DNA from: Epithemia pelagica | Taxonomy: Eukaryota > Protista > Bacillariophyta | Reading direction: 5' to 3' | DNA: 64,000 nucleotides | Assembly: GCA_946965045.2 (NCBI GenBank) | Contig: OX337231.1 | Location: 1,984,001-2,048,000, forward strand | Shown: one piece after another, positions 23,578 through 60,303 of the stretch | Layout of the letters: the number at the start of each line of letters is the position of its first letter | How positions within the stretch are numbered: the first letter of the stretch is position 1 | The notes under the pieces: model-generated | Database searches by the model: none | What the model saw: the letters and a program-made list of their open reading frames with translations, nothing else | Told to the model about the DNA's origin: nothing | Made by a program: the position numbers and the translations under genes

Positions 23578-23740
23578 ATTTTTATACCGTGCTATTTTAC
23601 ATGGGTATGGCACTCTGATCAGAAGCTCGAAAACTTCCCCCAACACTCTTTCACCATAACCACCTGCCGTTCTTTGGCCGATCCTCGTTGATCTCATCAT
23701 CCTTTGATTCCTTTCCTTTCCTTTCTTTTTCAGTCTCATC

Positions 23741-27167: not shown

Positions 27168-27203
27168 GATTAACAGTCTCAAAGCTTATTTCCTTGTGGT
27201 TTC

Positions 27204-27983: not shown

Positions 27984-28216
27984 TTACTCATAGTTAACTC
28001 CCGTCCTCTCAAAACCTTTCCAAGACTTAAACTCAACGCACATCCGGGTACCCTTGGTCGCACAACACGCCACACATTCCCGTCAAATCGCGAAAATATC
28101 ACATACGTGGTACATACGTGGCACACGTGGTACATCCGGGTTCACATCACATCACACATTAAATAAACCACATCACACCGCACATTAAATAAACATCGAA
28201 CCAACCAAATAACACC

Positions 28217-33904: not shown

Positions 33905-34681
33905 AATTCTCACCGTCTATGGTGGTTAGATTCTACATCTCATCGATTCCCCATGTCACATAGCCTCGTGCTATCGCATCATGCCATCTAGCTTCGAGCT
34001 ATGTTCCCTAGCTTCGCGCTATATCGACCTATATTTCTTCGCAAATCATGAAAAGTGAGAATAGATTGACAAACTCACTCTCAAGACTAAACTGGGTCGT
34101 GCGGTATTACAACGGACGTAAATTTGGCCGTTGCTCGGACATTATACTAACGCCCTAAGCGTACGCGCCCGAAATCATCGAGCGCGCCCAAGCGACATCC
34201 GAGCGCTGTCGGCATCTATCCGACCCAACGGTCTAAGTATCCCAGGCACGACACACGATCACGCGAGACCATATTTCCATTCCCACAATCTCCAAATTGT
34301 CAACAAGCTGCGCGCCATGAAAACAACTATGCCAACCCAAAGCAAGAGCTGTTGACCCTGTATATGTTATCCGTCCACATATACATGTCATATACATCAC
34401 ATGAATCGACTCCAACTATTCCAAACCTGTTGCCGCCAAGAACCTATGACACATGACCCTTGGCAGGACCGAACATTTCACGTAGACCTATCGTAGTAAT
34501 CAACACACAATCTAACAATATCACCATTTATCACATCTTCTTTTGTGTCCCAACTATCCTTCTGATAGACTTCGACTTGCTTGCTTCTCTGACCCTGAGA
34601 AGCTTGTATCGGTTGGTGACCTACCTGATTGTCTGCTCTTCCGAGCATCAATGCCTCTGCAATTCCAAGAGAATTGTAACA
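33899..34681 (+). repeat. Copia 3' LTR
   Basis: Direct repeat of 26385-27167, preceded by purine tract ggggag. Confidence 0.95.
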
Positions 34682-34686
34682 GTTCC

Positions 34687-37367: not shown

Positions 37368-37596
37368 TTAACCCTTTCAGCCCGGCATACCCCATTTTCT
37401 GACAAATATGTCAGTCATTTTCATTTTAAGATGACCGTACCACTCACTTAACATAAATCTTGCGTATCTCTATGGGTATATCAAACCACGTCATTCCACG
37501 TTAGTATAATCTATAGGGACAAACAACCCAAGACTCGTCCCCTTTTTGTTCGTTTGCATTCATCCACCTCGTCCTCATCCCTTGCCTCTGGACACC

Positions 37597-38382
37597 ATGG
37601 AGTCCCCTACAGAGCGGCAACCGTCCAAGCGCTTTAAACACAACACACCACAATCTGAAGCAAAATGTTTGTTCATAGAAGATGAAGACGAACAAGTTTT
37701 CAAGAAGGAATGCAAGGCGGCCTCTTCTCCGTTGTTCCTTAGCCCTCTGGGCAACAAATTGGTTATTGCTGCAGAAGCGAAAGGAGAACCAATTGATTTG
37801 CTCGAAATCAACAAGAAAGTTATTGAACACGACGTTCAAGAAATGATTGATGAAGACAACAAGGTGCTCGATCTGGATTCCAGCAAGACTACCACTCAAG
37901 AAAGCGATGCCAAACCGACTGCTGCAGGCCAGACTATTACCGCACAGAAGAAGAAAAAAGACAAAAAAACAGAGAAGAAAGGTGATGTGAAGACCGAGAT
38001 CGAAGCAACTCCATTTATTCCGCACAATGCAGACGAGATCTGTGACGAATGTGGACTCAGTCCCTGCGAAGCAGAAACATACAAGGTTCTCCTACAGAAG
38101 GCAGGGGATGAAATGTCAAAGAAAAACAACCACCATAACAGGGCTACTCGCCACCACTTGTACAAGCTATACACCGCTACCAAGTATGGCAAACTCGGGC
38201 GATCACATCGCGTTCGGATTCCAGAATGCGTGGAAGAATCTATTCATGATATGTTCCCCGATCCAAACAACGAGTATACTGGATTTCGACATTCTATTGG
38301 AGAATTGCAAGGCGACGACTACGACCGCTTGATGGTAGATGAACAACCAGCCAACTACTCTGATTCTTCAGACGACGAATAA
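37597..38382 (+). CDS. piggyBac passenger protein with Cys motif and P2X7-ballast/KolX-like domain (copy 1)
   Basis: CDECGLSPC..RHHLYKLY..YGKLG..RVRIPECV..I..MFPDP..YTGF. ATG at 37597. Confidence 0.7.
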   Translation: MESPTERQPSKRFKHNTPQSEAKCLFIEDEDEQVFKKECKAASSPLFLSPLGNKLVIAAEAKGEPIDLLEINKKVIEHDVQEMIDEDNKVLDLDSSKTTTQESDAKPTAAGQTITAQKKKKDKKTEKKGDVKTEIEATPFIPHNADEICDECGLSPCEAETYKVLLQKAGDEMSKKNNHHNRATRHHLYKLYTATKYGKLGRSHRVRIPECVEESIHDMFPDPNNEYTGFRHSIGELQGDDYDRLMVDEQPANYSDSSDDE

Positions 38383-38538
38383 GGTAAACATATTTACTAT
38401 AGAATGACTTCTCATCTTCTTTTTAGATGTAAAAACTCGTACGACATGGATTTTTTTGTAGAACTTGCTGCAATACATGAATGTAGTGCTCATTGGTGCT
38501 GATGTAGTGCTCGTGGATGCTTTTGCAGCTTTGGTCAT

Positions 38539-40896
38539 CTATCCGAATTTTCGGACTTGGTTTTCCTTGGCACAAATTCCCTTCTGGGCTTTCTCCTTCT
38601 GTTTCTCGGTTGGAGTGTCATATCCTTCCACATTCCAGTCCAAGACGTGGGGGTTTTCCGAATGGTACTCGTCCAAGCGATCATGAATCTTCTTACATTC
38701 ATCATTGTAGTTCTTTATATTGTAATAGTTGTGATACAGGCTGAAACACTCCGGATGGAAACATTTCTGGCACTGCACACAACCATAAACTGTCAACGGG
38801 TTGGCCGTTGCAGTATCGCCCATGATCCGGCAAAGGTGACAGACGCCACGATGTTTGGATCCCTTCTTACTGTTCTTGTCAGGATTGACCGTGAAAATGT
38901 GATGATGCAATGCAGACTCGTACTTGATGAGGTTTTTGGTTGGGATTGCTGTCTCATCATCGTCCTCTTCAACAGATCCCAAACTTGATCCACCTGCCCT
39001 TGACCGGACAGCGGAAGCCGGCACAGAGCCACTACTCGGTGGCGTTCCCTTCTTACGACCTGATTTCGGTGTTCTTTTGCCCTGTTGGTATAGTTCTGCA
39101 TAGGGAGAGCAAAGAGCGCAGGCAAGTTGGCGCTTGAACTCGCAAAGTTTCATTACATTTGACTGTTTCCCATCGTTATCCTCCTCGACTTCAATGAGCT
39201 TCATTTGGTGCAGCTTGAGATATACTTGAAAGGCATTCAGGATACAGAGATCCTGAAGGAAGTGCCATACTTGGAGCGATAACTGATATTCTTTTCTACG
39301 ACATGCATTGGTGGCTCTCATTTGATCTGCACGATCTACACCGTTCATGAACAGGTTGTAGGCCACAACCGGTGCTGGTGCTTTGAATGCATGTCGGATG
39401 TGCATTGAATGACCAATCCATCGCCAAAGGGTTGCCAACCCATGCACCTTCTCCACAGCTTCCTCATCATTGTCATACAGCAACGTTTTGGACGGAGTTC
39501 CAAAAAGATCGTTGGTGTAGAAGACAACTGGTTTTTTGTCTAAGTAGACAATATATCCACAACAGTCTGCCGCTATGGCATATTCCTTCTCGATCTCCAC
39601 TATATCTGACACCTCAAAGCCAACTTTCATGCGTGGCAATGTCTTGGAGTACTCTTTTTGTTTTTCCTTTTGCTTTTGCTTTTCCTTTTCAGGATGCACA
39701 ACGGCGTTGAATGCCTTCACTAACACCCAGGAACCACGAGGCTTTCCATCCAGATACTTCATTGCCTTCGTCACATTCGTTTTGTTGATCTTGTCCACCA
39801 GATTTAGGCGTACAGTGCCTGTAATCTTGATGTTCCCATCGGTAAACTCATCAATCGCTCGTCCCAAAGAGTGCCTTGTGTAAAAATTGTCCATGTACAC
39901 AATGGTAGGTGGGATCTTCTCTCTGGGACGAGTGGACTTGGCAGAGACGAGTGCACGATACAATAAGCCAAGCATGAGAACCCACAACATACTTGCAGAA
40001 TCAACTGCCACAGGACAAGCATTTCTGATACGAGATTTTGTTGCTTGACAAAGTTGGTTGAAGGAACAAGTCAGTTCGCCAAACAACTTCAAAAACTGTT
40101 CTGCAGGCGTTTGATTGACTGTGTTGCCGGAACCATTGTCCCAAAGGCCAAAGGTGTAGGTATAAGTCCATCCCACCACAGCGTAATATCGAATGGCAAA
40201 CTTGTCGGGCTTCGAAGGGATGTATGTCGAAGCCCTGGTCCTGGCTTTGGTCGGGCAACTTGCTTCGTCGAGAGCAATAGGACCAATGGGTTGAGCAACT
40301 GAAGCAAAGTTGCGAAGAATATGGCTCTTTGCAGCTCTCATTGACCACAGAGGGTCGTCAGGATTCTTTGCCATCGACTGAGAGTATATGCGAAGAGAAC
40401 CACGAATGGCTACAAAGGTATCTCTCGACATGGTAGAAGAGAAAGCAGAAGAGCCCAAGAACATCTTTTGACTCCACAACTCCTTCATTTGTGTAGAGTT
40501 ACAGAGCGACATTGCAATGTCCAATCCCAACACACACCGAAGAGCTTTTGTGGTGAGTACAATTTTGGCTCTCTGTCCACTCTGCTTCTCTTCCAAGGCC
40601 TGTTTCGTTGCTTTGAACATGAAGCGATCAATGAACCGAGGAGGGATAAAGAGGAGGAATAGTCCTAATGGACCAGACTCCAAGAAGGCTTGTTGGCATG
40701 CCTTTGGATCATGTAGGTGAAGATCTGAGGAGGCGATTTGGTTGTCGATGTATTGGTTCTCGCTTCGGTTCTTGGAAATATCCCCCAACTTGACCTTGCC
40801 ATCACGGTGCAGACTTGTAATTACGTCATCGTCCTCTTCATTAGCATCGTCATTGTCATAGTTGAGCAGGACAGCGGCGTCAGAGGTACTTTCCAT
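38539..40896 (-). CDS. piggyBac transposase (DDE_Tnp_1_7-like) with C-terminal Cys-rich domain (copy 1)
   Basis: IALDEA, KPDKFAIR, YMDNFYT, YNLFMNGVDRADQ, CHLC..CVQCQKCFHPECFSLYH. Confidence 0.93.
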   Translation of the reverse strand: MESTSDAAVLLNYDNDDANEEDDDVITSLHRDGKVKLGDISKNRSENQYIDNQIASSDLHLHDPKACQQAFLESGPLGLFLLFIPPRFIDRFMFKATKQALEEKQSGQRAKIVLTTKALRCVLGLDIAMSLCNSTQMKELWSQKMFLGSSAFSSTMSRDTFVAIRGSLRIYSQSMAKNPDDPLWSMRAAKSHILRNFASVAQPIGPIALDEASCPTKARTRASTYIPSKPDKFAIRYYAVVGWTYTYTFGLWDNGSGNTVNQTPAEQFLKLFGELTCSFNQLCQATKSRIRNACPVAVDSASMLWVLMLGLLYRALVSAKSTRPREKIPPTIVYMDNFYTRHSLGRAIDEFTDGNIKITGTVRLNLVDKINKTNVTKAMKYLDGKPRGSWVLVKAFNAVVHPEKEKQKQKEKQKEYSKTLPRMKVGFEVSDIVEIEKEYAIAADCCGYIVYLDKKPVVFYTNDLFGTPSKTLLYDNDEEAVEKVHGLATLWRWIGHSMHIRHAFKAPAPVVAYNLFMNGVDRADQMRATNACRRKEYQLSLQVWHFLQDLCILNAFQVYLKLHQMKLIEVEEDNDGKQSNVMKLCEFKRQLACALCSPYAELYQQGKRTPKSGRKKGTPPSSGSVPASAVRSRAGGSSLGSVEEDDDETAIPTKNLIKYESALHHHIFTVNPDKNSKKGSKHRGVCHLCRIMGDTATANPLTVYGCVQCQKCFHPECFSLYHNYYNIKNYNDECKKIHDRLDEYHSENPHVLDWNVEGYDTPTEKQKEKAQKGICAKENQVRKFG

Positions 40897-41398
40897 GGTT
40901 GAAAGAGACGATGGAGGTGCCTGGGTACAAAAATGAGTGGTGTGAAATTTCAGAAAAAACAGCAAAACTCAACAAGTAACTGGCAGATCATGATGGTCCG
41001 ACCACCCATCGATAGAACACACTAAGACGCATCTATGGTAACAAACAGTACTCCGATAACAGAGAAGTCATTGACATATGATCGTTGCAAAATCTCAATT
41101 TTGGCAATTGATGATATTGTCATCATTTTTTGAATCACGAGTTGTTGGTCATAACTCACGTGGTGTTTTGTTAAATGGATTGCAATTTTGTTAACTATTT
41201 TTGATGACAAATTTGTCAGTGACCGGTACCCCCAAGCAGGGGTGAGTCCAGTCCCGCGTGTCTGAAAGCACGATGTGCTTTCTCCTTCTCACCCCCTTGG
41301 CTCGACCTGGCCGCTCTCGACATTGATACAAATTTCATTCTACCTCCACACATCCATCACGGTGGTGGAGGTGCAGTGGTATCCAAACGACCTACAAC

Positions 41399-44300
41399 AT
41401 GTCTTCTTCTTCCCACAAACGTCAGAAGCTGTCTCAGAAGCAAGCCCGAGAATCCTTTGATGCTCAAATGGGATCCTTACAATCGGTTGCATCTGCAGGC
41501 ATCGCCAAAACAAACAGCACCCCTGCGTCCCATGCCCGTTCGTCCTCTACACCCGGTATTCAGTCCTTTCGCCATGCTTCCTCCGTTGCCATTGGTGCCA
41601 ACGTTCCCTACGAAACCCCCTTGGCCAGTCGGCAGCCACAACAACAACAATCATCCAATGTTGGCAGGTCGGAACCATCTACCTTTCTTGACAGCGCTGC
41701 GGCCAGTTCCTTATCCACTCTTGCCTCTGACCGAACTCAGCCTCCTCGCCGTGTCGAAATGGTTGCCTTCCCTCCCTTGGCCTCTAACGATTCTGGTCAT
41801 CGTCCGTCAGGAAACGAAGTCGATGAAGAAGCACAGACTCACAACCCAACTACAAGGGGTGTCTCATCTCTTTCGTTCCAATTGTGGCACAGGAAAAATT
41901 CGTTTGGCGAGATGGAATTTGGGACTCAATCGTCCCCTCCCAAGCCTCTCTCCACTCTACAACTGTCGGCACAATCGCCAGGTGTAGAACAACCAGAGGA
42001 TGCCCCAAATACCGAGTATACTGTCCCTACTGCCGTCGCTCCATCGGCCTCAACCCAGGAGCCGACGACAGCACCTACTACTAACGATCCATCTCCAACC
42101 CCAATCCAAGCACCTACCGCTACAAAGCCTTCTCCAACCTATGCCCATCTCACCGGACGAGTGAAGAATGTGAAAGAAGGAGCCTATCTCCTTCCTTTGC
42201 GACGCCAACCTCCCTTTGCATGTGCCAATCCTGGCAACTCCGCCATGCTACATCCTCCTCTGATTGTTGTTTCTCCAACCGCTACTACAACTCGGTCAAA
42301 ACTTACCCTTGCCTCCAACAACTGCTCACAGCTCATGAGGAAGGCCAAAAACTACACATCTGGTGTCACTAGATCCTCAAACGGCAAATCCAAACAACAA
42401 CGATACCAACCTCAATCCAAAAAGCGGAAATCAATCAGCGAACAATCAGCGGTATCGTCCACTCTTTCCGATGCCACGCCTATACCCTCACCGTCGTCAC
42501 CTACCGGAACCCACGCCATTCATGTTGTTACATCATTTGCTCTCAGGACTCTTCTGTTGGAAGATGTATGGTTTCTGAAACCCAACACCCCTGTCGTACT
42601 CTTTTTTGACGAGACCATCCTTCCGCCGCGATACGGAAAGCGTTGGTTGAAAGTTTGGCGGGACACATTGCAATCGGAATTCATCCCGACTGTTTTGTGT
42701 CAAGGAAAACCATATAAACAGCTCGTCGGCTGGGTCCATCAAAATCCACACAGAGACAAGGTTGAGGGAGAGCATCCGATGAAGCAGCTAGCTGAAACTC
42801 TTGTGGAACGAACCCAAATTGGTATTGAAATGAAATTTCCTATCTTTTCAGCGATAGATTGCAACCTTGCATTCCCTCCTCAACAGTGTATTCAACAGTT
42901 ACTGTCATGGTTCGAGGTTTTTCACTACCCTGAGGGGCTTTTCATGCAAGCAGACTACCACCCAGAAAGGAGTTGGTTGGAAGTTTTTAAGCGTCTAAAG
43001 ACAAGTGGAGACGACCGACTTACCTTGTTCCATCGTGCTATTCAAGAAAGTCACGGAGATAGATTCATGATGGCGGAGATGAAAAGTGTATGGGAGCGCC
43101 TTGAGAACAAACAGTGTGCGGAAGAAAAAGCTGCAGAATCCAAAGAGGCACTAGCTGTGGCCGTCAAAGATGCTCAAAGACAACCTCTGATTCCCCCCCC
43201 TATTGTTGATGTTCCGGTTGTGAAGAAGTTCTGCAAACGCGTCGATTCGCGGATTCAGGAGAGGCTCGAAGATTGTTTCGGTAGATTTAACAACATCTTC
43301 GAGAAATTCCTCTCTGAATCCGAAACACGACATCTTGCTGCTGAATTTGAGCGTGTCTTACCACGTCAATTCAATGCATTAATGGGGTTCAGTGGCTATG
43401 ACAAGAAACTTGAATTGGCTCCAAAGAAACAACGAGGATTTCTACGACTTCGTTATTCTCTTGACGTGTTTTTCCAATTTGTCGCAAGAGCACGAAAGCA
43501 CAATAATCACATGTTCGTGCCATTCGCCATGATCTTTGCATTGGCTCAATATGCGTGTGGGCATTCAATGCTGGCCACACAACTCCCTGTTTGGTTCGGT
43601 ATATCCGTCTCCAAGCGGACGATGGAGCGTAGAGTTGAGGAATGGATCATGACCTACGATGCCAAAGTTAAAAGATCAATTCGGAAAGTCAGCAACTTGC
43701 TTTGTGTCTTTGACAACCTCCAAGACGGTAGACGCCTACAATTCCAGAGCGGTCAAAGCTGCATCTTTACACGGGTAACAGCGCGATTTGTCATGGCTAT
43801 GTATATAGCCAAGTTTCCAGAGTGGGTATACTCATATTTGGAACGGCCTAAACTCACGTTCCTAAGGCAAGCTATTCCGGCACCTTACCAAATGCCCGCG
43901 TTTGAGAAGTCCAAGTCTTTCAGTTTCATCAGTGATATTGTTTCTGTCTTCCGTGGTACCTATGACACCGACTTAGAGAAGAATGGCAACCCCTTTGACC
44001 TTTCTGGCCAACGAGTCTCTGTTTTTGTGAACATGGTTGCATGTTGCAATACATTACACAATCTTAAACGGTTCTTGTCAGTGAAACGGCGTAAAGGTCT
44101 TGATGTGGATTACACTCTACAGCCCAAGGCCTTCTCTAATTGCCGTTCGAGACGACGCATCAACGCCGCTTTCAACGGGCTCAGAAAAAACAAGGACAGC
44201 AACATATTCGAAATTGCCCGACAATTCCAATCTCGTGTTGTCCGTACATGGCGTTATGTCCCTCCGGTTGCAGAACTCTTGATTCTGCCTGTGTCGGTGC

Positions 44301-46597
44301 TGGATGAAACTACCAAAGTCGGCGCAACCGGAATCATCATGGACTTCATGGTCCTACATGGTTTGTTACGATACGACGAACACACGGAGAGTTTTTGTCC
44401 AGGTGATTCCTGGGAATCCAAATGGCTGTTCATTGTGGGGGATGGATTATCGGTTGAGAGAATGTTCCAATTTTTTGATAACATTCTCTCCATTGTGGAC
44501 TCCAAGACAGCGTCTTTCCGGCAAGCGTATCGTCAGGCAATGGCGATTTCTCGTGTGATCCATCGTGTCGTCCCCATCAACGGCGACCTACATGTCCGAT
44601 TCCATATGCTGGAGGCAATCTACCGTCTTTTTTATGGCGGCTTCCTTCAGTGCGTGCAGCACAGACTGAAATGGAAGCGCCTGGATCCCTACGAGGTTTC
44701 GAAGAGCTACCGACTCTGTCATCGGTTGGTAGTTCTGGTGTATGAGGAACTGGAGCGCATGATGCTTGATGTTTTTATTTTAGAAACGGTGAAAGAAGAA
44801 CAAGCCGACAGGTTTGTCCATCGCCAAGAGGAAGAAGACTTGGCAGTCTTTATTGCCAATAAGTATATGTCCTTCCTCAATGAACAGGCAAAGGAAAGTA
44901 AAGATTGGCTACGTCGTTTTCTGTGTAACTTCCTCCTTATCGTCAAAAAATATCTCGCCTTCTTGCAAGCGGAGCAAAGTGGCGACGCCGTGTCTATGGA
45001 GGCATTGGTAATTGACTATCTCCCCATCTTCTTTGTAACCAAAAAGAGCAACTCTTTCAGTATCCAGCTGCGACTGATCGAATTGTATTACCATGGATTA
45101 CCAATTTCCATTCTGCAGTTGATCAGGATGAATCGGACGAAACGACAGAAGACAAGCAACAACCCAAATCCTGCGTATCAAAAAGAAAGCGCGTTAGACC
45201 AAATCATGGAGCGGCTCATGCCTTTCTTCAAAGGCATGAGCCACAATGGAACCGAGGCCGCATTTGTGCGAGTCTCCCAAATGCTCACTGCATGCCAACG
45301 AGCAAAGCATTTTGTTGAGTTCTATACTCGTACCAGGTCTGATGGTGAGGCGGAACTTGCCGAAAGGAAGAAGGAGATGAAGGAAATGCAAAATGACGAC
45401 GCAACGAACGACACAGGTAATGACACAAGGAACGACGCAAGTCAAGATAATGCAACAGCGAATACCAAGAGTACAGAAGATAAACTTGCTGATCCAGGGG
45501 ATCGACACAAGAAAACCACGCATCCCAAGTCGAAGGTTAACCGCATTCTGGTAACGGAAGTCCTTGTTCTCGCCAGATGCCACGAAACGAGAAAAGAAGC
45601 GACCTTGGTTATTGATGGCAACCATTTTTGGAGGGCACTCGATGGAACCTCCCTTGAAGTGAAGAAGAAGATCCGAAATCGCGGAGACGGCAAAGTGGAA
45701 ACCGACATAACGCACCAATATGTTGTTGTACAGGCACAACAGATGATGAAGTCGTTCAAAAGCCAGAAAGATACAATGGAAAATGAACAGACGGAAAAGG
45801 AACACACGGAAGGAGATAACAGCGACAATGAGTCTATGGAAACAAACGCAAATTCGGCAATTGATCTCGAAGAGGCCATAAAAGAGCAAGATAACGAGGG
45901 CTCTGCTGATGGGCTTGCGTATTTTAGTGATGACGAGTCTGCCGTGGTGGAAGTTGAGGGAGACACGTCTTTTTTTGGGACACAAACAAGTGATTTGCTG
46001 GTCTCGGATGATGAGGACGACAATGATGGAATGGATGGAGATGAAGAAGAAGCACGTCTTCCAGAGAAAGACATGGAGGGGACCGAGATAGCAGAAACAC
46101 AGTTGCAAGACATGATAGCTGACGAAGAGACAGAACTGATGGATGGTACCGAAAATGAGTACGACGCTACAAGTGTCGGCTCAGCAGAAGACAACGACGC
46201 TGAAGATGACGAGAACAGGAGCGTGGACGACCAACGGGGAGATGAAGGGGATGGTGGTACAGAAGGACATAAAGAGGAAGAACCACTTATTGAGAAAGGG
46301 AAAGTAACAGGGATGAAGGTCGCTCCAATGAATGCAGTAGCGGCAAAAGATGTTATGGCCCATGCGGTACAAGAAATAGAGAAGAAGAATGTAATGGCTT
46401 TACGACAATGGGAAGCAGCAAGGAAAGAGCGGGAAGACCATTTCCTACGGCTGCAGTTGTTCCAAAGACTTGAAAAAATGGAGGATGATGGAAACGCTCT
46501 TTCACTCACAACGAGGAACGATGTTGGTACCCCCTTAGGTGATAAATTGGATAGAGGGTTGGATCTCTTCGAGCTATACAAGAAATCGTTACATTAA
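41399..46597 (+). CDS. Large putative Academ-type (DUF6589-like) transposase, 1732 aa
   Basis: VFDNLQ, FIVGDGLSVER, PINGDLHVRFHMLEAIY..FYGGFLQ, DQIMER. S/P/T-rich N-terminus and acidic C-terminus. Confidence 0.68.
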   Translation: MSSSSHKRQKLSQKQARESFDAQMGSLQSVASAGIAKTNSTPASHARSSSTPGIQSFRHASSVAIGANVPYETPLASRQPQQQQSSNVGRSEPSTFLDSAAASSLSTLASDRTQPPRRVEMVAFPPLASNDSGHRPSGNEVDEEAQTHNPTTRGVSSLSFQLWHRKNSFGEMEFGTQSSPPKPLSTLQLSAQSPGVEQPEDAPNTEYTVPTAVAPSASTQEPTTAPTTNDPSPTPIQAPTATKPSPTYAHLTGRVKNVKEGAYLLPLRRQPPFACANPGNSAMLHPPLIVVSPTATTTRSKLTLASNNCSQLMRKAKNYTSGVTRSSNGKSKQQRYQPQSKKRKSISEQSAVSSTLSDATPIPSPSSPTGTHAIHVVTSFALRTLLLEDVWFLKPNTPVVLFFDETILPPRYGKRWLKVWRDTLQSEFIPTVLCQGKPYKQLVGWVHQNPHRDKVEGEHPMKQLAETLVERTQIGIEMKFPIFSAIDCNLAFPPQQCIQQLLSWFEVFHYPEGLFMQADYHPERSWLEVFKRLKTSGDDRLTLFHRAIQESHGDRFMMAEMKSVWERLENKQCAEEKAAESKEALAVAVKDAQRQPLIPPPIVDVPVVKKFCKRVDSRIQERLEDCFGRFNNIFEKFLSESETRHLAAEFERVLPRQFNALMGFSGYDKKLELAPKKQRGFLRLRYSLDVFFQFVARARKHNNHMFVPFAMIFALAQYACGHSMLATQLPVWFGISVSKRTMERRVEEWIMTYDAKVKRSIRKVSNLLCVFDNLQDGRRLQFQSGQSCIFTRVTARFVMAMYIAKFPEWVYSYLERPKLTFLRQAIPAPYQMPAFEKSKSFSFISDIVSVFRGTYDTDLEKNGNPFDLSGQRVSVFVNMVACCNTLHNLKRFLSVKRRKGLDVDYTLQPKAFSNCRSRRRINAAFNGLRKNKDSNIFEIARQFQSRVVRTWRYVPPVAELLILPVSVLDETTKVGATGIIMDFMVLHGLLRYDEHTESFCPGDSWESKWLFIVGDGLSVERMFQFFDNILSIVDSKTASFRQAYRQAMAISRVIHRVVPINGDLHVRFHMLEAIYRLFYGGFLQCVQHRLKWKRLDPYEVSKSYRLCHRLVVLVYEELERMMLDVFILETVKEEQADRFVHRQEEEDLAVFIANKYMSFLNEQAKESKDWLRRFLCNFLLIVKKYLAFLQAEQSGDAVSMEALVIDYLPIFFVTKKSNSFSIQLRLIELYYHGLPISILQLIRMNRTKRQKTSNNPNPAYQKESALDQIMERLMPFFKGMSHNGTEAAFVRVSQMLTACQRAKHFVEFYTRTRSDGEAELAERKKEMKEMQNDDATNDTGNDTRNDASQDNATANTKSTEDKLADPGDRHKKTTHPKSKVNRILVTEVLVLARCHETRKEATLVIDGNHFWRALDGTSLEVKKKIRNRGDGKVETDITHQYVVVQAQQMMKSFKSQKDTMENEQTEKEHTEGDNSDNESMETNANSAIDLEEAIKEQDNEGSADGLAYFSDDESAVVEVEGDTSFFGTQTSDLLVSDDEDDNDGMDGDEEEARLPEKDMEGTEIAETQLQDMIADEETELMDGTENEYDATSVGSAEDNDAEDDENRSVDDQRGDEGDGGTEGHKEEEPLIEKGKVTGMKVAPMNAVAAKDVMAHAVQEIEKKNVMALRQWEAARKEREDHFLRLQLFQRLEKMEDDGNALSLTTRNDVGTPLGDKLDRGLDLFELYKKSLH

Positions 46598-46659
46598 ACA
46601 TACTTTATAGTTATTTCATTGAATACACGAATTGAGAGTTCCTATCAGTATAGGAACCA

Positions 46660-48756
46660 TTACGAGTCTTTAGAAGGAAAGATGGCAAAGCCATCCCATG
46701 CCCCAGGTAGATTCATACGTGGATTGCCGTTGGTATCGTACCCCAATTTAACTCGAAGCTGAAAGCCATCAACATCCGGCTCCAGAATGCGACTGGCGAA
46801 GCATTTCATGATGGTAGCCTTAGCCCGTTGTCTTATGGTTGCCTTGGTTTTAATCCGAAAAACTCGGCGGCCAAATGCCTTCTTCTTCTTGCCCTCTCGG
46901 TCCTCAGTTTCGAAATCAACAAGTGTGTTAAGGAACACGTCCTTGTGAAGGGATAGCTGGGAGGGACGAACTTTGTCAGTGATGAAGATACGAACGAAGT
47001 ATTGCTTCAATGCTTCGATATCAACGCGACAGTCCAATGCCGTAGATATGGGCTTCTCACGACAGCGCCAGCAGGCACCATTGCAACGAAGTGGAATATC
47101 ACAAACGGATGGGTGGTGTGGATTGAGCATCATGGACTCTAATTGCGAATGGATGCACTTGCCATTATCAAGACATAGCAACGACAGGACACTCAAGAGA
47201 TTCTGCCATTGGCGCTCAGCAAGGACATGAGCAGGCATTGTAGTAGCAGCAGAGACCTTTGTTCCTGGACTGCTTGTGGCGTTGTCCGTGGTTGTTGCGG
47301 TTTGTGACGCCTTTTTGGATTCTTCATATTTGGGTATAATGAAGATACGGGTCATGATAGATACAAGGCTGTTGAGGGACATGACGATTGTGAAGGAAGA
47401 GTTAGCAGGTGTTGCACGCTGACTTCGGCCACATCGGCCGGAACACTGAAGCAGGTCTTGTAAGCTTGCAGGTATTCCATGGAAAATAACCTTATCAACC
47501 TCGCCACAGTCGATACCTGAACTTGCCGTGCCGGCAGTAGCAAAGTACGCAACAGGGTCAAATTGTAGAGCCCGTCCAGTCGTTGGGCATTCGTCAAGGA
47601 GAGGCTTGCCGACAAATATGTCCGTATGGTGGAACTTTTGTTCCCGGAACATATTGCCGTGTACAAGCAGAACATCTTTTTGAATTCCATCACGGTGATT
47701 CAAATGGTTAAGCTTCACACGAGACTTCTCGTGTAAGTTGGTGATAGCCTTCCGCGAGTTTGAATACACCATCAATTTCCTACCACCCGGCAGCCGGCAG
47801 GTCTTCCTTAACTCGGATTTGATGCGGGTAGTAGGAGAATCCTTGAATGAAAGGTCAAGGAGCACATTTCGTCGCTCTACTCCTGAATGATGGAAAGGCC
47901 AAACTAGATCGTTGGAGAAGTCGAAGGAGATTCCGGTGAGACTGGACAAGTCTTGCAACATAGGTGGGGAGGCTGTGGCAGTCATGAAAATGACTGGGAT
48001 GGGGACCTTGGTTTTTTTTTGTAGGACTTTGAAAAAACACTTTCTCAATGCTCCGAATTCTTCACGGAATTCCATTCCGTGAGTGGCGAACAGATGGCAT
48101 TCGTCGATGGCCACAAGACGTAAGGTTCCATTGGAACAACATTGGGCAATGGTCGCTTGCCAAGAGGGATCGTTGCTGATTTTTTGGGGTGACGTAAATA
48201 TAAAGATCCTCTTCTTTGCTGGATCGTCGTTAGGTAAATTCTCCAAATGACGACGGAGAATGTTATTGAGTCGACCGGAACGAAGAACATCAAGATTAAA
48301 GACTTGGAGGCGGTTGGAAAGATGGTTGGCCAACGATATGTGCTTCAATTTGGACGTTTGGTCGGCTGCCAAACTCAGTAAGGGGACAATTGTTACTGTG
48401 ATCCCTCCACACAGAATACCACCGATGTCACGGACGGCCGATTTGCCGCCGCCGGTCGAACGAACAAGGAGGAGAGGACGTAGCATGGACGGTGGTGTAG
48501 AAGGGCCAATGTGGCGCAGGAGAACTTGCTTTGTGGCGTCGATCTGCCACGGACGGGCGGTCTTCCCATGCCAATCTGTGAAGACGGCTTCTATGGCCTG
48601 TTGCAGAAGGTCCGGACCATGGGAAGGACGGTCGGTAGGGTTGTGGACCGAATGGAACGACGGAAGCAATGTACTAGAGCCGGTTGCGGATGCGGTCGAT
48701 GGATCTCCGCCTTCGTTGTTGTTGTTCCGAAATGGGGTGTTTTGCTGGCTGTCCAT
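46660..48756 (-). CDS. RecQ-like superfamily 2 helicase, 698 aa
   Basis: STGGGKS, VPLLSLAADQ, IDECH, MTATA, SGID, QCSGRCGR and C-terminal CIH..CNGACWRC. Confidence 0.9.
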   Translation of the reverse strand: MDSQQNTPFRNNNNEGGDPSTASATGSSTLLPSFHSVHNPTDRPSHGPDLLQQAIEAVFTDWHGKTARPWQIDATKQVLLRHIGPSTPPSMLRPLLLVRSTGGGKSAVRDIGGILCGGITVTIVPLLSLAADQTSKLKHISLANHLSNRLQVFNLDVLRSGRLNNILRRHLENLPNDDPAKKRIFIFTSPQKISNDPSWQATIAQCCSNGTLRLVAIDECHLFATHGMEFREEFGALRKCFFKVLQKKTKVPIPVIFMTATASPPMLQDLSSLTGISFDFSNDLVWPFHHSGVERRNVLLDLSFKDSPTTRIKSELRKTCRLPGGRKLMVYSNSRKAITNLHEKSRVKLNHLNHRDGIQKDVLLVHGNMFREQKFHHTDIFVGKPLLDECPTTGRALQFDPVAYFATAGTASSGIDCGEVDKVIFHGIPASLQDLLQCSGRCGRSQRATPANSSFTIVMSLNSLVSIMTRIFIIPKYEESKKASQTATTTDNATSSPGTKVSAATTMPAHVLAERQWQNLLSVLSLLCLDNGKCIHSQLESMMLNPHHPSVCDIPLRCNGACWRCREKPISTALDCRVDIEALKQYFVRIFITDKVRPSQLSLHKDVFLNTLVDFETEDREGKKKKAFGRRVFRIKTKATIRQRAKATIMKCFASRILEPDVDGFQLRVKLGYDTNGNPRMNLPGAWDGFAIFPSKDS

Positions 48757-49201
48757 GCTTGTGGATGGACAATTGAATACAACACCAAGTAAGCAGAAGT
48801 GTCGTTGGTAGTATGGTAAAGCTTAGAGGGGCTTGGGTGTGGTTGGAAAACCTGCAATGCGGATGAAATCGACCTCACTTGTTTGGCACCGTGGTGGATG
48901 CGTTGAGGTGAAATGCGATTTGTATCAATGTCGTAAAATCGCCAAATTTGGGTGGTCGAGCCAAGGGGGTGAGAAAGAGAATGTACCTTTAGGTACGACT
49001 TATATGCGACCTGGACTCACCCCTGCTTGGGGGTAAATGGAGCGGGGGGACAGCCCGCTTTGTGAGAAGGGGCCACATGCGTTTCGGGCCCCACCACATC
49101 GAGTTTTAGAGCCCTCCACGTGAAAGGTGAGAGTGCGACTGACTTTGGTTAACAGATTTCACAGAAAAATCTAGCCACCCTCATAACCTATCCTAGACAC
49201 A

Positions 49202-49228: not shown

Positions 49229-49243
49229 ACGACTCTGGCGACC

Positions 49244-50758
49244 ATGAATTCCAACGAGGTCGAAGGTTCCATCATCAAAAAAACCCTACGCGGGAAACAG
49301 GTCATTGATATTGATAGATTTGATGCGAAACATTCGCTGGATGACCTGGCAAGAGTCCTGTCGCAACACGAGTCCCTGGACACGTTGTGCATTCGGGAGG
49401 ATGAATTGGACAGGAGACCCATCAGCCACGACGAGATTGGTCGCTTGCTGGAGGCCATTGAAGGACATTCCAACTTGACGCTCATTTCCCTCCCGCGTTG
49501 TTGGGCCTCAACCGAAACGGACACGAGAATGATCCGGCATTTCTCGGATAGCCCCAAATTGGTGATCCTGAACCTAAGACTAGGGTTTATTTTGTCTAGA
49601 TCCTGCATGCCCTCTCCTGGCATCCGTTTGGATTTGTATGACAATGTCAACATTCGGTTGGAGGTGTACCAAGAACTTGCAAAAATGCCCAATCTCATTT
49701 CCTTAAAAATACCCACTCCTCCCATGTCCTCAGAGGGACACCGTAATACCCTTCGCACATTGATCAATTTGACGAACGACCCACTGTGCAATATTTCGCA
49801 AATGTCCTTTGCCACGAAACTGAGCCACCAAGATCTTAAAAATGTGAGCAACTACGCAAAGTTGACGGAACTATCCATGGCATATGTCAATGCTGATCAA
49901 TTACGTTGGTTGTTTCCCTTGAGTCAGCTGGAGAAAGTAACATTTCATTGTATCACTTCTACGGGTATTGTTCCCAGTGACCAGTCATCCCACATCTTGA
50001 ATGGATTGGCAGAGTTCTTGATTGCACAACCAAAGTTAAAAAACTTATGGCTCGCGGAATATGTGGTCAATTCTGACGGGGACACATTTGCACTCCACGA
50101 GTCTACCGAGTCCGCAATCCCTCACCTCACCCAAGCGGTGAAAACCCATAAATCCTTGCATTCGCTGAGGTTGCATCCCCCATTTGGACATGGAGAGCAA
50201 GTGTCGCATGCAATTTATTTGGCATTGTCAGCGGCATTACCTTACAATAGCAGGATCAAGAAACTGGACCTTAGTCATTGTCCTTGGGATTTTAAGGCGC
50301 GGCGTGGTCTGTTACCAGCAGCAGTACACCTCCAGGAGTTGTTGCTTGATCTGGATCGCATGGACATAGACCAGGTGAAAGATATCGCATCATGGGTGGA
50401 CAAAAATATGAATATAATCAGAATTACGCGCAATGATTTGCGGTGGTCTCTTTGGCGCCGCCCTCGTTTGCCTAAAGATTTGACTAAAGTGTACCATCAA
50501 ATTCGCAAGGCCCTGGCCCGAAACAAGCTAGCGCAACATGCCAACAATGCAGCTTATGCACATCCGGCCATCTCCATTACTGTTTGGCCACAGCTGTTGG
50601 CCAAACTTGGATCTAATGGACACGAGGGCACTCCTCTGCTTGTGTTCCTCCGCAAGAACACGCAGCCGATCATGTCATTGCAGGGGCCGAATTTGAAACG
50701 AAATTCAACGAACAGATTATTCAAGCAACGTGGCAAAAAGATCGCTTCCCATTTATGA
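49244..50758 (+). CDS. LRR/RNI-like protein, copy 1
   Basis: LxxLxL repeats (SLDTLCI, NLTLISL, LVILNL, QLEKVTF, KLKNLWL, SLHSLRL, RIKKLDL) and C-terminal VWPQLLAKL..VFLR. Confidence 0.7.
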   Translation: MNSNEVEGSIIKKTLRGKQVIDIDRFDAKHSLDDLARVLSQHESLDTLCIREDELDRRPISHDEIGRLLEAIEGHSNLTLISLPRCWASTETDTRMIRHFSDSPKLVILNLRLGFILSRSCMPSPGIRLDLYDNVNIRLEVYQELAKMPNLISLKIPTPPMSSEGHRNTLRTLINLTNDPLCNISQMSFATKLSHQDLKNVSNYAKLTELSMAYVNADQLRWLFPLSQLEKVTFHCITSTGIVPSDQSSHILNGLAEFLIAQPKLKNLWLAEYVVNSDGDTFALHESTESAIPHLTQAVKTHKSLHSLRLHPPFGHGEQVSHAIYLALSAALPYNSRIKKLDLSHCPWDFKARRGLLPAAVHLQELLLDLDRMDIDQVKDIASWVDKNMNIIRITRNDLRWSLWRRPRLPKDLTKVYHQIRKALARNKLAQHANNAAYAHPAISITVWPQLLAKLGSNGHEGTPLLVFLRKNTQPIMSLQGPNLKRNSTNRLFKQRGKKIASHL

Positions 50759-52426
50759 GACAGCGTGTACAAGAAGCCAACAAGGACAACAAGACGGCCA
50801 AACTTGACAAAGAGGAGAACAACGTCGCACGGATGAGGGTCTTGTCTGAATTGTGAATTCCGACCACTCCTTGACGATTACCAGACAGAAGGCTTCAGGA
50901 CTGTGCTCAAACAGATAACAGTTCTATATTATTTGTTGGTCTAGGCCAACTTACTCCTACCATAGTGTTCATCCATCAATGCTTTCCTACTCCTATGTAC
51001 TCCATTTGGTGGAATGTTCTTTCTTTTCGTGAAGGGTGTGGATAAAGGAAAGTCACGGCCATACTTTCCATGGCGTCTGTGTAGCACGACTTGTTTTGGT
51101 GGTTACTGGAATGGGCATTGGCAACACCGAAAATAATGATATTCGAGAATCTGTTGAAAACCGGATTGTTGCTTCTTTTTCAAGAAAACAATGAATCTCT
51201 CTTCAACGTAGCAGAAAGTATTACACAATTGCAATAGTGGATCCAATTACTTACAAGTACTGTTTAAGCAGAAACGACAAAGCTGGCCCTGAATCGATAG
51301 CAAAGTCCTCCCCACTGGAGGTGGATGAAAAAATGTGGAAGCTCGAAAAGTCAGCGAGTCGCACACAACCTGCACCCAGCATGGTCAACAACCAAGACAA
51401 AGGAGTAGAGGAGCAATCCAGTGCCCAATTTATCACCTCAAGTATGACCATGGCTGGTGGATCTGACGACAGCGACAGTATTTCCGATGAAATGGGAACG
51501 TCATGGTCGCATCGAATGCTCCAAGTCTGACCAAGAGCGAAGTCGCGCCCATGACGAGGTTCCCAGTAGTAAAGATCGAAGTTCGGAACACAGTTCCACT
51601 CCCTGCGCATGCGATTGGAGTAGTGAAGAATTGATCATCGGAAAGGGTAGTATCGCCCTTCCAAGTCTTTGCCCAAGGATTTCAAAGAAGGAGCCCGCAT
51701 GCACGTACTGGAAAAAGCCATCCTGTCCGTTGAGTGTTGTGGAGTCTCGACAGAGACGTTTCTGTCTGCCAATGACACCATTGTGGCTGCTCCCCGATCC
51801 TGTTGCTGATTGCCATCCCGTTCTTGCAACGACGACAACAAGAAGTCCTCCATCGGCATCGACCAATTGCCGTTGCACCATTATCAATCACAACACGACC
51901 CGAAAACTCTCTTGTCACAACAAGAATCGAACGGATTGATGCCAACGATTTGCTGCAATCCTCTTTAACAACAAGAAGTACCCAGAAGAGCCATTGGACT
52001 CATTGGTCTGTCGATACTGATGGAGGATTGTCGTCCCGAGAAAGAAAAGTTGATTGCGAAGCATGTAATCCTCAAAGGGTGTTTCTTACATTGTATCTCC
52101 GATTGCAGCTCGAGGTACGATTTACAGCTTGTTGCGATGGAAGTTGTCGTTGAGTGTACTGTTGTTTTGTCCAGTGTGACAACGACAAAAGCGGTTTGGT
52201 TCTTGTAATTGTTCCGTTGTTCCATCGACTTGATTTCGTTGCGGGTCATCTTATGGCCATTTGATGATAGGCTGCAGTGACCAGCATTGAGTAGTTGAAC
52301 ATATAGGGAAGAAGGAGTACTTCCCGTCTAACGCGCCGTGCGCGGTGCATCGTCTAATCCGGTTGCGTAGGTCCAAACAAGCAATATCCTGAAAGTACCC
52401 GATTCTTTTTGCACCTGAAAAGTGAT

Positions 52427-54064
52427 CTAAAGTACAGTCTCTGGCCTATGGAGGCTTTTTGGTGCGGAACGTGGCCTCTTCTTCGAGCTCATTGAACGTG
52501 TTGGCACGCTTCGGTAGTCTTCAAGGTCAGTCACTACCAGTCGTTCCGGCTTCGCAATCTCTCCCGTCGGGACATAAAGCCAGTTTCGAAGGACTTCAGC
52601 ATCGAGGTGTTCAAAGCCATATTTATGGTAAAGTTTCTGTATAACCTTGCGACTATCGGCCGCAAAAGATGCACTGTCACACTCGATAGCAGTCGGTGCT
52701 CGTCCGAGTTGAAGCCCAAGGAACTTAATCGTGGCGTCGCCAAGCTCGGAAAGGAACACGGGCTTTGGCACGAGAACGCCCCATACATCTTGCAACAAGG
52801 CGTAGGCTTGGCTTTCTCGGATGAAACTTCTAAGTCCAATTGCGGTGGCCGTATCGAACTGCTTCAATGCATATTCCTGGCCTTCCCATCGAACACGAAA
52901 CACGGCTCCATTTCTTCCATACCCAATTGGGTCCATTATAACTAGGTCACCAACAGAAACAAATGGCAACCAGGAAGCAAGACGAAGGGTCTGACTACTG
53001 GTCGCTTCCGAAGGGACGTAATCTGATTCGTTGTCATTATGCTCATCAATTTCATTCACTGCCCGAGGCGGAGTTGAGGCGAGACCCCAATTTTCGGGGC
53101 ACGTGAATTGTCCATCTGTCGCTTTTTTCGCGAGACGCGCAAAATGGGCCCACGCCCGCAAATAGTTCTGTTCGCCAAGCAGATACGACCTGCTGACATA
53201 AACACGAGGCGTTGTATCAGTACGACTTGTATCGCAGACCCTTACAAAGTAGGTTCGTGTAGCACTGGTCAGTACTCCGAATCGAATGCTGTTGTTCTTC
53301 ATTTGCCGAAAAAGCTGTGCCAAAGGGTGGCATACGTGACACCATGTTGCACTCCGGAACCTTTGTGTCGTCATGGTCATGTATCCTTCGTTGTATGCAT
53401 CCGCAATTTCGGTGGCACCCAGGGGAAGCAGAAGATTCTGCGTAGATTTGCATTCGACAGGTGCAATCAAATTGCGCCGAACTGCACCATCAGCATCTGT
53501 ACCATTAATGTAGGAAAGGGCCCGATCCATGTCACCAATGGCATTCGTACTGGTGCGATGTTCCAAGTGAACATCCAAGTTATGCAAATAACGAAGCACA
53601 AGTACAAGGTACTGCATTTCGTCGGATTCAGTTATCACACGCTCAAATCCATTCAGAAGAAAAAAGGGCAACGGGGGGACCCTTGAAGGGGTCAAGCGCA
53701 AATCTCGATCTACTTGAAAGTTCTCGACGCCCGTTTCGAAATCAGCCCACGCGCTCAGCTGCGGAAAATAATAGCGGTTCCTCTGTCCACTCGCCGCGGT
53801 TCTCTGAGACGCACCATCAATTCCCATCAACGGAGGAGGCACTCGATGGTTCAAAACTTGGTCAACTGTTGTGCACTTTGGTGCGGCCATAGCCTCAAAC
53901 GTCGGCATTAGACTTGAGCGCAAATTATTCCAGGCTCTTCGCTCTTTTATTTCCTCCCTCGTCAGAGTCAGACGACTGGTCTCAATTGTCCTCGATCGGT
54001 CTTCATTCAAGACCTTTCCATTATTGGTGGCTGTGATAAATGCCGTTTCTGAGTATTCAGCCAT
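52427..54064 (-). CDS. Restriction-endonuclease-like plus protein-kinase-like fusion, copy 1
   Basis: ESD..GDMD..VECK..AQLFRQM..FGVLTS, then GYGRNG, ALK, HLDAEVLRN, TDLE. ATG at 54064. Confidence 0.75.
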   Translation of the reverse strand: MAEYSETAFITATNNGKVLNEDRSRTIETSRLTLTREEIKERRAWNNLRSSLMPTFEAMAAPKCTTVDQVLNHRVPPPLMGIDGASQRTAASGQRNRYYFPQLSAWADFETGVENFQVDRDLRLTPSRVPPLPFFLLNGFERVITESDEMQYLVLVLRYLHNLDVHLEHRTSTNAIGDMDRALSYINGTDADGAVRRNLIAPVECKSTQNLLLPLGATEIADAYNEGYMTMTTQRFRSATWCHVCHPLAQLFRQMKNNSIRFGVLTSATRTYFVRVCDTSRTDTTPRVYVSRSYLLGEQNYLRAWAHFARLAKKATDGQFTCPENWGLASTPPRAVNEIDEHNDNESDYVPSEATSSQTLRLASWLPFVSVGDLVIMDPIGYGRNGAVFRVRWEGQEYALKQFDTATAIGLRSFIRESQAYALLQDVWGVLVPKPVFLSELGDATIKFLGLQLGRAPTAIECDSASFAADSRKVIQKLYHKYGFEHLDAEVLRNWLYVPTGEIAKPERLVVTDLEDYRSVPTRSMSSKKRPRSAPKSLHRPETVL

Positions 54065-54422
54065 GGTGGTAGCAGCCTCCTCGTTGCAATTGTACCTATG
54101 AAGACCTAGCGAGTCAAGTACTATTCTCTCCTTAGTTATTAAGCAAAAAGTCGACACTCTAAACGGCCACCCTGCTGTTCAGCTCCGCTACTACTCCCCA
54201 GTGGGGGTGGCTTTGAGGGTGTGATTTCGATTTCGTTGAAACACCCCCGCTGGGGACTAGTACGCTGCTGGGAGAAAAGTGCCTTATCCCCAGCGCGGGC
54301 GAGTATTTTACGGCAAATTGATAATTCCTCCACGAAATTTCCACCTCCGCTGGGACGTAATACGTGTCTGTGCCTTTTCTTTTTAACTTTCACAGAAAAA
54401 TTGGAACAGGCGAACAGCGACC

Positions 54423-55931
54423 ATGAATTCCAACGAGGTCGAAGGTTCAATCATTAGAAGCATAGAAGGGAAACAAGTCATTGATATAAATAAATTTGAT
54501 GCGGAACATTCGCTGGATGACCTGGCAAGAGTCCTGTCGGAACACGAGTCCCTGGACAAGTTGTGCATCATGGGGGATGAATTGGACAGGAGACCCATCA
54601 GCCACGCCGAGATTGGTCGTTTGATGGAGGCCATTGAAGGACATTCAAACTTGACGAAAATGTCCCTCCCGCGTTGTTGGGCCTCAACCGAAACGGACAC
54701 GAGAATGATCCGGCATTTCTCGGATAGCCCCAAATTGGTGCTCCTGAACCTACAACTAGGGTTTATTTTGTCGAGATCCGGCATGCCCTCTCCTGGCATC
54801 CGTTTGGATTTGTATGAACGAGACAATGTCACCATTCGGTTGGAGGTGTTCCAAGAACTTACGAAAATGCCCAATCTCATGTCCTTAAAAATACCCACTC
54901 CTCTCATGTCCTCAGAGGGACACCGCACTACCCTTCGCACATTGATCAATTTAACGAACGACCCAATGTGCAATATTTCGCAGATGTCCTTTGCCACAAA
55001 ACTGAGTCGCCAAGATCTTGAAAATTTGAGCAACTACGAGAAGTTGACGGAACTATCCATGGCATATGTCAATGCTGATCAATTACGTTTCTTGTTCCCC
55101 TTGAGTCAGCTGGAGAAAGTAACATTTCATTGTATCACTTCAACGGGTATTGTTCCCAGGGATCAGACATCCCACATCTTGAATGGATTGGCAGACTTTT
55201 TGATTGCACAACCAAAGTTAAAAATCTTACGGCTCGCGGAATATGTCGTTAATTCTGACGAGGACCCATTTGCACTGCACGAGTCTACTGAATCCGCAAT
55301 CCCTCACCTCACCCAAGCGGTGAAAACCCATGAATCCTTGCATTCGCTGAAGTTGCATCCCCCATTTGAAATTGGAAAGCAAGTGTCGCATGCAATTTAT
55401 GTGGCATTATCAGCGGCATTGCCTCACAATAGCAGGGTCAAGAAACTGGACCTTAGTCTTCGTCCCTGGGATTTGAAGGCGCGGCCTGATCTGTTACCAG
55501 CAGGCGTACACCTCCAGGAGTTGTTGCTTGATCTGAATCGCATGGACATGGACCAGGTGAAAGATATCGCATCATGGGTGGACAAAAATATGAGTATAAT
55601 CAGAATTACGCGCAATGATTTAGAGTGTTCTCTTTTGCACCGCCCTCCTCGTACGCGCCGCTATCCTCGTCCTTTGACTGAAGCTTTGACTAAAGAGTAC
55701 AATCAAATTCGCAAGGTCCTGACCCGAAACAAGCTTGCGCAACATGTCAACAATGCAACTTATGCACATCCGGCCATCTCCATCACTGTTTGGCCACAGT
55801 TGTTGGCCAAACTTGGATCGAATGGACACGAGGGCACTCCTGTCTTTGTGTTCCTCCGAAACAACACGACGCCCATCGGGACATTCAGGGGGCCGAATTT
55901 GAGAAGAGATTCCACTAGCAGATTTAAGTAA
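54423..55931 (+). CDS. LRR/RNI-like protein, copy 2
   Basis: Paralog of 49244-50758. 502 aa. Confidence 0.7.
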   Translation: MNSNEVEGSIIRSIEGKQVIDINKFDAEHSLDDLARVLSEHESLDKLCIMGDELDRRPISHAEIGRLMEAIEGHSNLTKMSLPRCWASTETDTRMIRHFSDSPKLVLLNLQLGFILSRSGMPSPGIRLDLYERDNVTIRLEVFQELTKMPNLMSLKIPTPLMSSEGHRTTLRTLINLTNDPMCNISQMSFATKLSRQDLENLSNYEKLTELSMAYVNADQLRFLFPLSQLEKVTFHCITSTGIVPRDQTSHILNGLADFLIAQPKLKILRLAEYVVNSDEDPFALHESTESAIPHLTQAVKTHESLHSLKLHPPFEIGKQVSHAIYVALSAALPHNSRVKKLDLSLRPWDLKARPDLLPAGVHLQELLLDLNRMDMDQVKDIASWVDKNMSIIRITRNDLECSLLHRPPRTRRYPRPLTEALTKEYNQIRKVLTRNKLAQHVNNATYAHPAISITVWPQLLAKLGSNGHEGTPVFVFLRNNTTPIGTFRGPNLRRDSTSRFK

Positions 55932-59059: not shown

Positions 59060-59362
59060 GGTGGTAGCAGCCTCCTCGTTGCAATTGTACCTTTGAAGAC
59101 CTAGCGAGTCAAGTACTATTCTCTCCTTAGTTATTAACCCTTTCAGCCCGGCATACCCCATTTTCTGACAAATATGTCAGTCATTTTGATTTTAAGATGA
59201 CCGTACCACTCACTTAACATAAATCTTGCGTATCTCTATGGGTATATCAAACCACGTCATTCCACGTTGGTATAATCTATAGGGACAAACAACCCAAGAC
59301 TCGTCCCCTTTTTGTTCGTTTGCATTCATCCACCTCGTCCTCATCCCTTGCCTCTGGACACC

Positions 59363-60148: not shown

Positions 60149-60303
60149 GGTAACCATATTTACTATAAAATGACTTCTCATCTTCTTTTTAGATGTAAAA
60201 ACTCGTACGACATGGATTTTTTTTAGAACTTGCTGCAATACATGAATGTAGTGCTCATTGGTGCTGATGTAGTGCTCGTGGATGCTTTTGCAGCTTTGGT
60301 CAT

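Follow-up and report, generated by a model that had tools for sequence, protein, structure and literature searches.

The window analyzed here is a 64,000-nucleotide stretch of contig OX337231.1 (positions 1,984,001 to 2,048,000). At 41227-49035 it contains a complete 7,809-bp element with two intact genes. Very probably this is a cut-and-paste DNA transposon that is autonomous, has moved very recently, and belongs to AcademH or to an immediate sister lineage. The element is bounded by perfect 25-bp terminal inverted repeats (TIRs). The left arm lies at 41227-41251 on the forward strand (TACCCCCAAGCAGGGGTGAGTCCAG) and the right arm at 49011-49035 on the reverse strand, and each is 100% complementary to the other. 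The repeats start with TACCCCC, and the element has TA..TA ends. A 21-nt terminal motif is found at two places in the window, both of them within the TIRs, where shuffled sequences lead one to expect 0. Beyond the TIRs, imperfect subterminal inverted repeats carry the symmetry inward to about 140 bp, and the two ends of the element can be aligned with each other (149-bp alignment, 73%). The left subterminal region together with the leader of the first gene spans 41227-41398 on the forward strand, with about 140 bp imperfectly mirrored at the right end. It probably holds transposase binding sites and a promoter. Its mirror, the right subterminal region with the leader of the second gene, spans 48757-49010 on the reverse strand.

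The first open reading frame (ORF1; 41399-46597, forward strand) encodes a putative DDE transposase of 1732 aa, and the second (ORF2; 46660-48756, reverse strand) encodes a RecQ-like superfamily 2 (SF2) helicase of 698 aa. Both are uninterrupted. They are arranged tail-to-tail, with a 62-bp spacer between the convergent stop codons (46598-46659). A preliminary description of this DNA had reported perfect 25-bp TIRs with TA at both ends and two uninterrupted, convergent genes with stops 62 bp apart; the complementarity of the arms and the ORF positions agree with it on all these points.

A Second Copy and the Insertion Sites

A second copy of the element resides on contig ctg1227l of the same assembly (ENA ERZ21939226), where it was found by an exact-protein look-up that returned both proteins as identical. 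Over 7,809 bp it shows 0 differences from the window copy and has the same end bases. The expectation that the TIRs would bound further copies is borne out by this identical copy, which stops where the first one does. Two 100% identical copies at different sites, with intact ORFs and perfect TIRs, also speak for the earlier suggestion that the element is potentially active, as far as sequence can indicate this.

The left flank of the element is the end of a piggyBac transposon, which is present in the window with two genes and as two 99% identical copies. The body of the first copy spans 37372-41226 and is preceded by its TTAA at 37368-37371, while the 99% identical copy with its own TTAA is located at 59134-62991. 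This second piggyBac copy (59138-63024) is uninterrupted, has clean TTAA duplications and has an empty site of its own at 54139-54142. At the point that corresponds to the insertion it reads GTC-AGTGACCGG-GCC, with a single AGTGACCGG (62983-62991) and without TA, and it serves as the reference for the unoccupied target. The terminal TA is therefore part of the element, as the preliminary description had concluded from the same piggyBac copy. Its use of this copy as an empty site holds for the left junction; it does not extend to the right flank, and the continuation of the piggyBac was found on another contig.

The two insertions are recorded by two target duplications of 9 bp whose members are shared out between the contigs. 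One member of the AGTGACCGG pair, made when the element entered the end of the piggyBac, flanks the window copy on the left (41218-41226), and the other flanks the second copy on the right, on ctg1227l. Of the AATGGAGCG pair, made by the other insertion, one member flanks the window copy on the right (49036-49044) and the other flanks the second copy on the left. The order in the window is AGTGACCGG, element, AATGGAGCG, and on ctg1227l it is AATGGAGCG, element, AGTGACCGG (6820-6828 and 14638-14646 of locus L003). To the right of AGTGACCGG, ctg1227l continues with the 33 bp that the first piggyBac copy lacks at its end, then TTAA, and then a match to the paralogue of the piggyBac left flank (window 23569-23614). 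The proper right end of the first piggyBac copy (...GCCGGGCTGAAAGGG) sits on L003, and the right end of the second piggyBac copy is unlike it.

Because the flanks of the two identical copies are reciprocal, we conclude that insertion took place twice, making a 9-bp duplication each time, and that the right halves were exchanged later. The exchange is either due to recombination between the identical copies (reciprocal translocation or inversion) or to a switch by the assembler inside the repeat. Alternative transposition was considered as a cause of the swapped flanks and is not needed, because the old duplications stay intact. A search through the neighboring ADH and 504-aa proteins found neither an allelic empty site nor an unswapped arrangement and led back to these two contigs alone. 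The swapped flanks either demonstrate or give warning that identical copies of 7.8 kb can rearrange this genome or its assembly.

The Transposase

ORF1 opens with a disordered N-terminus rich in S, P and T and closes with an acidic C-terminal tail; its conserved stretch covers about aa 430-1400. Its sole Pfam match is DUF6589 (PF20231; aa 958-1230, E 4e-7). No second transposase family was found in Pfam at E<=10, and a sequence search of the PDB with ORF1 gave no match. An exhaustive profile search recovered 769 relatives of ORF1 at E<=1e-3, mostly environmental, and DUF6589 is matched by 25 of 41 long sequences (40 hits and the query).

AlphaFold was run on aa 700-1340 with 146 sequences, and the resulting model is confident, with a predicted local distance difference test (pLDDT) score of 92.8 and a predicted template modeling (pTM) score of 0.91. 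In this model the catalytic core (aa 760-1300; 43676-45298, forward strand) has an RNase H-like fold that is split by an all-helical insertion domain. Structural alignment with VIA gave the P-element transposase 6p5a (Z 8.6 over 342 residues), Hermes 8edg (Z 8.2) and ISCth4 6xg8 (Z 8.1) as the best solved structures, with Z values of 8-9 that barely exceed the range that the tool rates as common. Retroviral integrase cores, Tn5, RAG1 and Transib come next, and the top matches are all DDE recombinases. In the ESM Atlas, the predicted shapes nearest to the same model after the DUF6589 clusters are bacterial IS66 transposases (template modeling (TM) score 0.53-0.58 by match), and a deep link between the modeled ORF1 fold and IS66 is possible.

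Three residues of the model likely form the metal-binding triad: D772 in strand 1 (codon 43712-43714), D1015 after strand 4 (codon 44441-44443), and E1271 in the helix that follows the insertion domain (codon 45209-45211). Among aligned relatives, D772 is conserved in 66 of 67, D1015 in 107 of 109, and E1271 in 66 of 68. E970, H1065 and D1267 are near-invariant as well. Within G-D1063-L-H1065, the histidine is kept in 105 of 111 relatives; D1063 is kept in only 75 of 111 and replaced by P or Q in 28 of 111. The preliminary description had read a D..GD..GDLH..E string in this protein. Its D772, GD1015 and G-D1063-L-H1065 are conserved, whereas its final E (E1072) is not, and the conserved glutamate is E1271. 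DUF6589 is listed in Pfam as of unknown function, and the model gives it a P-element/hAT-like DDE transposase fold along with candidate catalytic residues.

The Helicase

The SF2 motifs of ORF2 are intact and near-invariant (GGGKS at 102-106, DECH at 218-221, TAT at 259-261, and QxxGRxGR at 437-444). Sequence matches in the PDB are RecQ1, BLM, Escherichia coli RecQ, RECQL5 and WRN, at E ~1e-9. The model of ORF2 (pLDDT 88.5) has only RecQ-family proteins among its top 50 fold matches (RecQ1, RECQL5, BLM, RecQ, WRN), with E ~1e-17 and a TM score by target of at most 0.75. The fold alignments run to 630-660 columns over RecQ cores of 512-531 residues, which is nearly the whole catalytic core. Both kinds of match uphold the earlier naming of this protein as RecQ-like. 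Pfam recognizes only DEAD and Helicase_C in the ORF2 sequence, and the RecQ zinc-binding, RQC and HRDC domains were not recognized in it.

Related Families in the Same Genome

A word search returned 11 relatives of ORF1 (54-68% identity) and 17 relatives of the helicase (54-62% identity), all from the same assembly. A word search that used a diverse alignment found nothing beyond same-genome paralogues. Five further loci were examined (L001, L002, L011, L012 and L013), and all of them start with TACCCCC(A/T)AG and end with its complement. With the element in the window, this makes six families of the genome in which the helicase gene lies tail-to-tail with the transposase gene; in L013 the helicase is split into two ORFs. 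The genome holds several diverged families at low copy number.

Target duplications are present at L001 (TGGAGCTCTC, 10 bp), L002 (TTGGTTGCT, 9 bp), L012 (TGAGTCCAT, 9 bp) and L013 (CTAGGTGGTG, 10 bp). L011 has proper termini and no target duplication. The element of L011 (4348-11614, family P0006) also has a shortened helicase gene, and another exchange or a deletion may have taken place there. Collecting other copies had been proposed as a way to measure the duplication, and the six insertions now available from five families give 9 bp four times and 10 bp twice. Between the diatom families, nonsynonymous divergence (dN) is 0.31-0.42 and synonymous divergence (dS) is saturated for both genes, which indicates that selection has maintained the two of them.

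Distant Relatives and the Age of the Gene Pair

The tail-to-tail pair of transposase and helicase genes is also found in four environmental lineages at about 20-25% identity (L007/L008, L010, L014 and L015). The element of L007 (7636-14998; JGI metagenome 3300021915, with the same locus in 3300006505) has perfect 25-bp TIRs, CACACTGTAG, which start with CACACTG and give CA..TG ends. It is flanked by a target duplication of 8 bp, ACTTACTC. Next to the L007 element are eukaryotic genes for a chitin synthase and a cNMP-dependent kinase. TIRs were not found in loci L014 and L015. Because the pair is kept in four distant lineages, the association of transposase and helicase is ancient. Divergence of the transposase correlates with that of the helicase; two groups of kin drive this correlation, which is no more than consistent with an ancient association. 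Cluster look-ups for 20 distant relatives returned neither names nor taxa. Among the DUF6589 clusters closest to ORF1, the most frequent taxa are Basidiomycota, Cnidaria and Mucoromycota.

Classification and Alternative Readings

AcademH elements reportedly occur in animals, going by the title of Kojima 2020 (Mob DNA 11:15). Their target duplications measure 9 or 10 bp, whereas those of AcademX measure 3-4 bp (PMC10045372), and their hosts include Basidiomycota, Ascomycota and Mucoromycota (PMC10799480). The element in the window fits AcademH by its helicase, by the length of its duplications and by the distribution of its family. The preliminary description had proposed a stramenopile member of AcademH or a sister lineage of it. 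That proposal now gains from the joint presence of a DDE-type transposase and a RecQ-like helicase, from the 9-10-bp duplications, and from TIRs that bound a second copy. The results fit an extension of the host range of the AcademH kind from animals and fungi to a probable diatom, and they introduce no new kind. A look-up of a host SDHB gene in the Atlas gave no assignment finer than eukaryote. In the literature searched we found no report of Academ in diatoms and no paper that links DUF6589 (PF20231) to Academ.

Several observations weigh against this assignment. The proposed link between DUF6589 and Academ is drawn from architecture, duplication length and taxon distribution. A tie to AcademX would be expected to show as an XPG nuclease domain, and this domain was found in 0 of the 41 long relatives. 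L011 lacks a duplication, and the duplication of L007 is shorter than 9 bp. For the transposase model, the VIA scores are close to the common range, a Foldseek search against the PDB gave no match, and the candidate triad is assigned from topology and conservation and not from coordinates.

Some of these observations would suit a DUF6589-plus-helicase lineage that works in the same way and is not nested in Academ, but stands as its sister or as a superfamily of its own that is common among marine protists. ORF1 was set beside Academ by means of published descriptions and not of Repbase sequences, XPG-bearing relatives are absent among the long hits, the nearest relatives are all environmental sequences, and bacterial IS66 transposases provide the nearest predicted shapes after the DUF6589 clusters. 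We nevertheless consider such a separate lineage decidedly unlikely. A helicase gene, 9-10-bp duplications and TIRs make up the exact combination that has been published for AcademH (PMC10045372), and the DUF6589 clusters of Basidiomycota, Mucoromycota and Cnidaria overlap the fungal phyla of AcademH and the animals.

Kolobok elements with a RecQ helicase come to mind as well, either KolobokH or an element like Kolobok-1_CCri. Kolobok is present in the diatom Fragilariopsis cylindrus, KolobokH has RecQ, and Kolobok-1_CCri has its RecQ on the opposite strand (PMC9587614). Kolobok duplications, however, are specific for TTAA and 4 bp long, and Kolobok termini are 5'-RR..YY-3' (PMC9587614); in the present case the duplications measure 9-10 bp, are unrelated in sequence and contain no TTAA, and the termini are 5'-TA..TA-3'. 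We reject Kolobok on the length and sequence of the duplications and on the termini, and regard it as very improbable. The C/DxxH signature of Kolobok (PMC9587614) is not seen as such in ORF1 either, which has G-D-L-H with an aspartate that is P or Q in 28 of 111 relatives. The broader motif rule for Kolobok, hAT, P, MuDR and Dada (PMC9587614) likewise does not describe ORF1, in which the spacing of G-D1063-L-H1065 is one residue. A search of 1.1 million characters of supplementary text on Kolobok did not find the conserved motifs of the ORF1 family.

It is hardly credible that the element is no live transposon, with its identical copies due to assembly duplication or segmental copying and its gene pair immobile or domesticated: the swapped flanks may point to assembly trouble inside the repeat and the search through neighboring proteins returned no allelic empty site, but the identity of the copies ends exactly at the TIR ends while their surroundings differ, each flank pair has its own 9-bp duplication, an uninterrupted target exists, and the same ends recur in five diverged families, four with 9-10-bp duplications and one (L011) with none.

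Proposed Mechanism and Significance

The fold, the conservation of residues, the duplications and the conservation of the gene pair are the demonstrated part of the AcademH-type transposon described here, and from them we infer binding sites, chemistry and a role for the helicase. ORF1 would act as a DDE transposase whose RNase H-like core contains a helical insertion, the arrangement of the P-element, hAT and RAG1/Transib enzymes. It would bind the ends of the element (TACCCCC(A/T)AGC...GGGGTGAGT), cut the element out, and join its 3' ends to target DNA with no evident sequence preference. The 9- or 10-bp duplications observed would reflect the stagger of this joining, and D772, D1015 and E1271 would likely bind the metal ions. 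ORF2, as a putative RecQ-type 3'-5' DNA helicase whose partnership with the transposase would predate the deepest branches in this analysis, would most likely unwind or remodel DNA at the ends or at the target. It could open the 9-10-bp stagger, dismantle the transpososome, or aid gap repair. Both genes are read inward from the mirror-image subterminal regions, which would probably provide promoters and binding sites.

To our knowledge, AcademH is among the least studied groups of DNA transposons, and we know of no member that has been shown to move and of no established role for the helicase. Intact identical copies in a culturable alga would provide an experimental handle. Hosts appear not to be confined to animals and fungi, and with 769 relatives, most of them environmental, the group seems far broader than catalogued. 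New here are the proof of 9-bp duplications from swapped flanks, the assignment of a structure to DUF6589, the rejection of Kolobok, and the breadth of environmental relatives. On a bolder view, DUF6589-plus-RecQ elements would form a deep-branching lineage that extends across eukaryotes, is best represented in marine protists and lies basal to or outside the catalogued Academ, with diatom copies that are still jumping. We hold this view to be rather unlikely. If it is true, these copies would offer the first tractable system for a transposon-encoded RecQ helicase in DDE transposition, including any part that the helicase may have in setting the unusually long stagger of 9-10 bp.

Other Features of the Window

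A tandem array occupies 49238-64000 of the window. Its units of about 5 kb are 90-99% identical, and each contains a 504-aa gene on the forward strand and a 576-597-aa gene on the reverse strand. The second piggyBac copy is inserted at a unit junction of this array. At 26385-34682 lies a long terminal repeat (LTR) retroelement, probably inserted recently, in which 784-bp LTRs that are 99.2% identical flank a 1895-aa ORF.

Comparison With Known Systems

AcademH is the closest known system. Both are TIR DNA transposons with a large transposase and a separate gene for a RecQ-like helicase, with duplications of 9 or 10 bp, a low copy number and several diverged families per genome. The taxa in which DUF6589 is commonest (Basidiomycota, Mucoromycota, Cnidaria) overlap the hosts of AcademH (animals, Basidiomycota, Ascomycota, Mucoromycota). 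The differences are the probable diatom host and the environmental protist relatives of the element described here, whereas AcademH comes from animals and fungi, and the 8-bp duplication of one distant relative. Kolobok elements with RecQ are also DDE transposons that carry such a helicase, on the complementary strand in Kolobok-1_CCri, and are present in diatoms, but their 4-bp TTAA duplications, RR..YY termini and C/DxxH signature have no counterpart here.

In structure, ORF1 comes closest to the P-element, hAT (Hermes) and IS256-type (ISCth4) transposases, which likewise have a helical insertion domain in the RNase H-like core ahead of the catalytic glutamate. These families generate 8-bp duplications. 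They have no sequence similarity to ORF1 and, unlike the element in the window, no helicase gene. Helitrons encode an HUH nuclease fused to a Pif1-type superfamily 1 helicase, and they have neither TIRs nor target duplications. They resemble the present element as transposons with a helicase of their own (PMC12730594), whereas here a DDE enzyme is combined with a separate SF2 helicase of the RecQ type, with TIRs and with target duplications.

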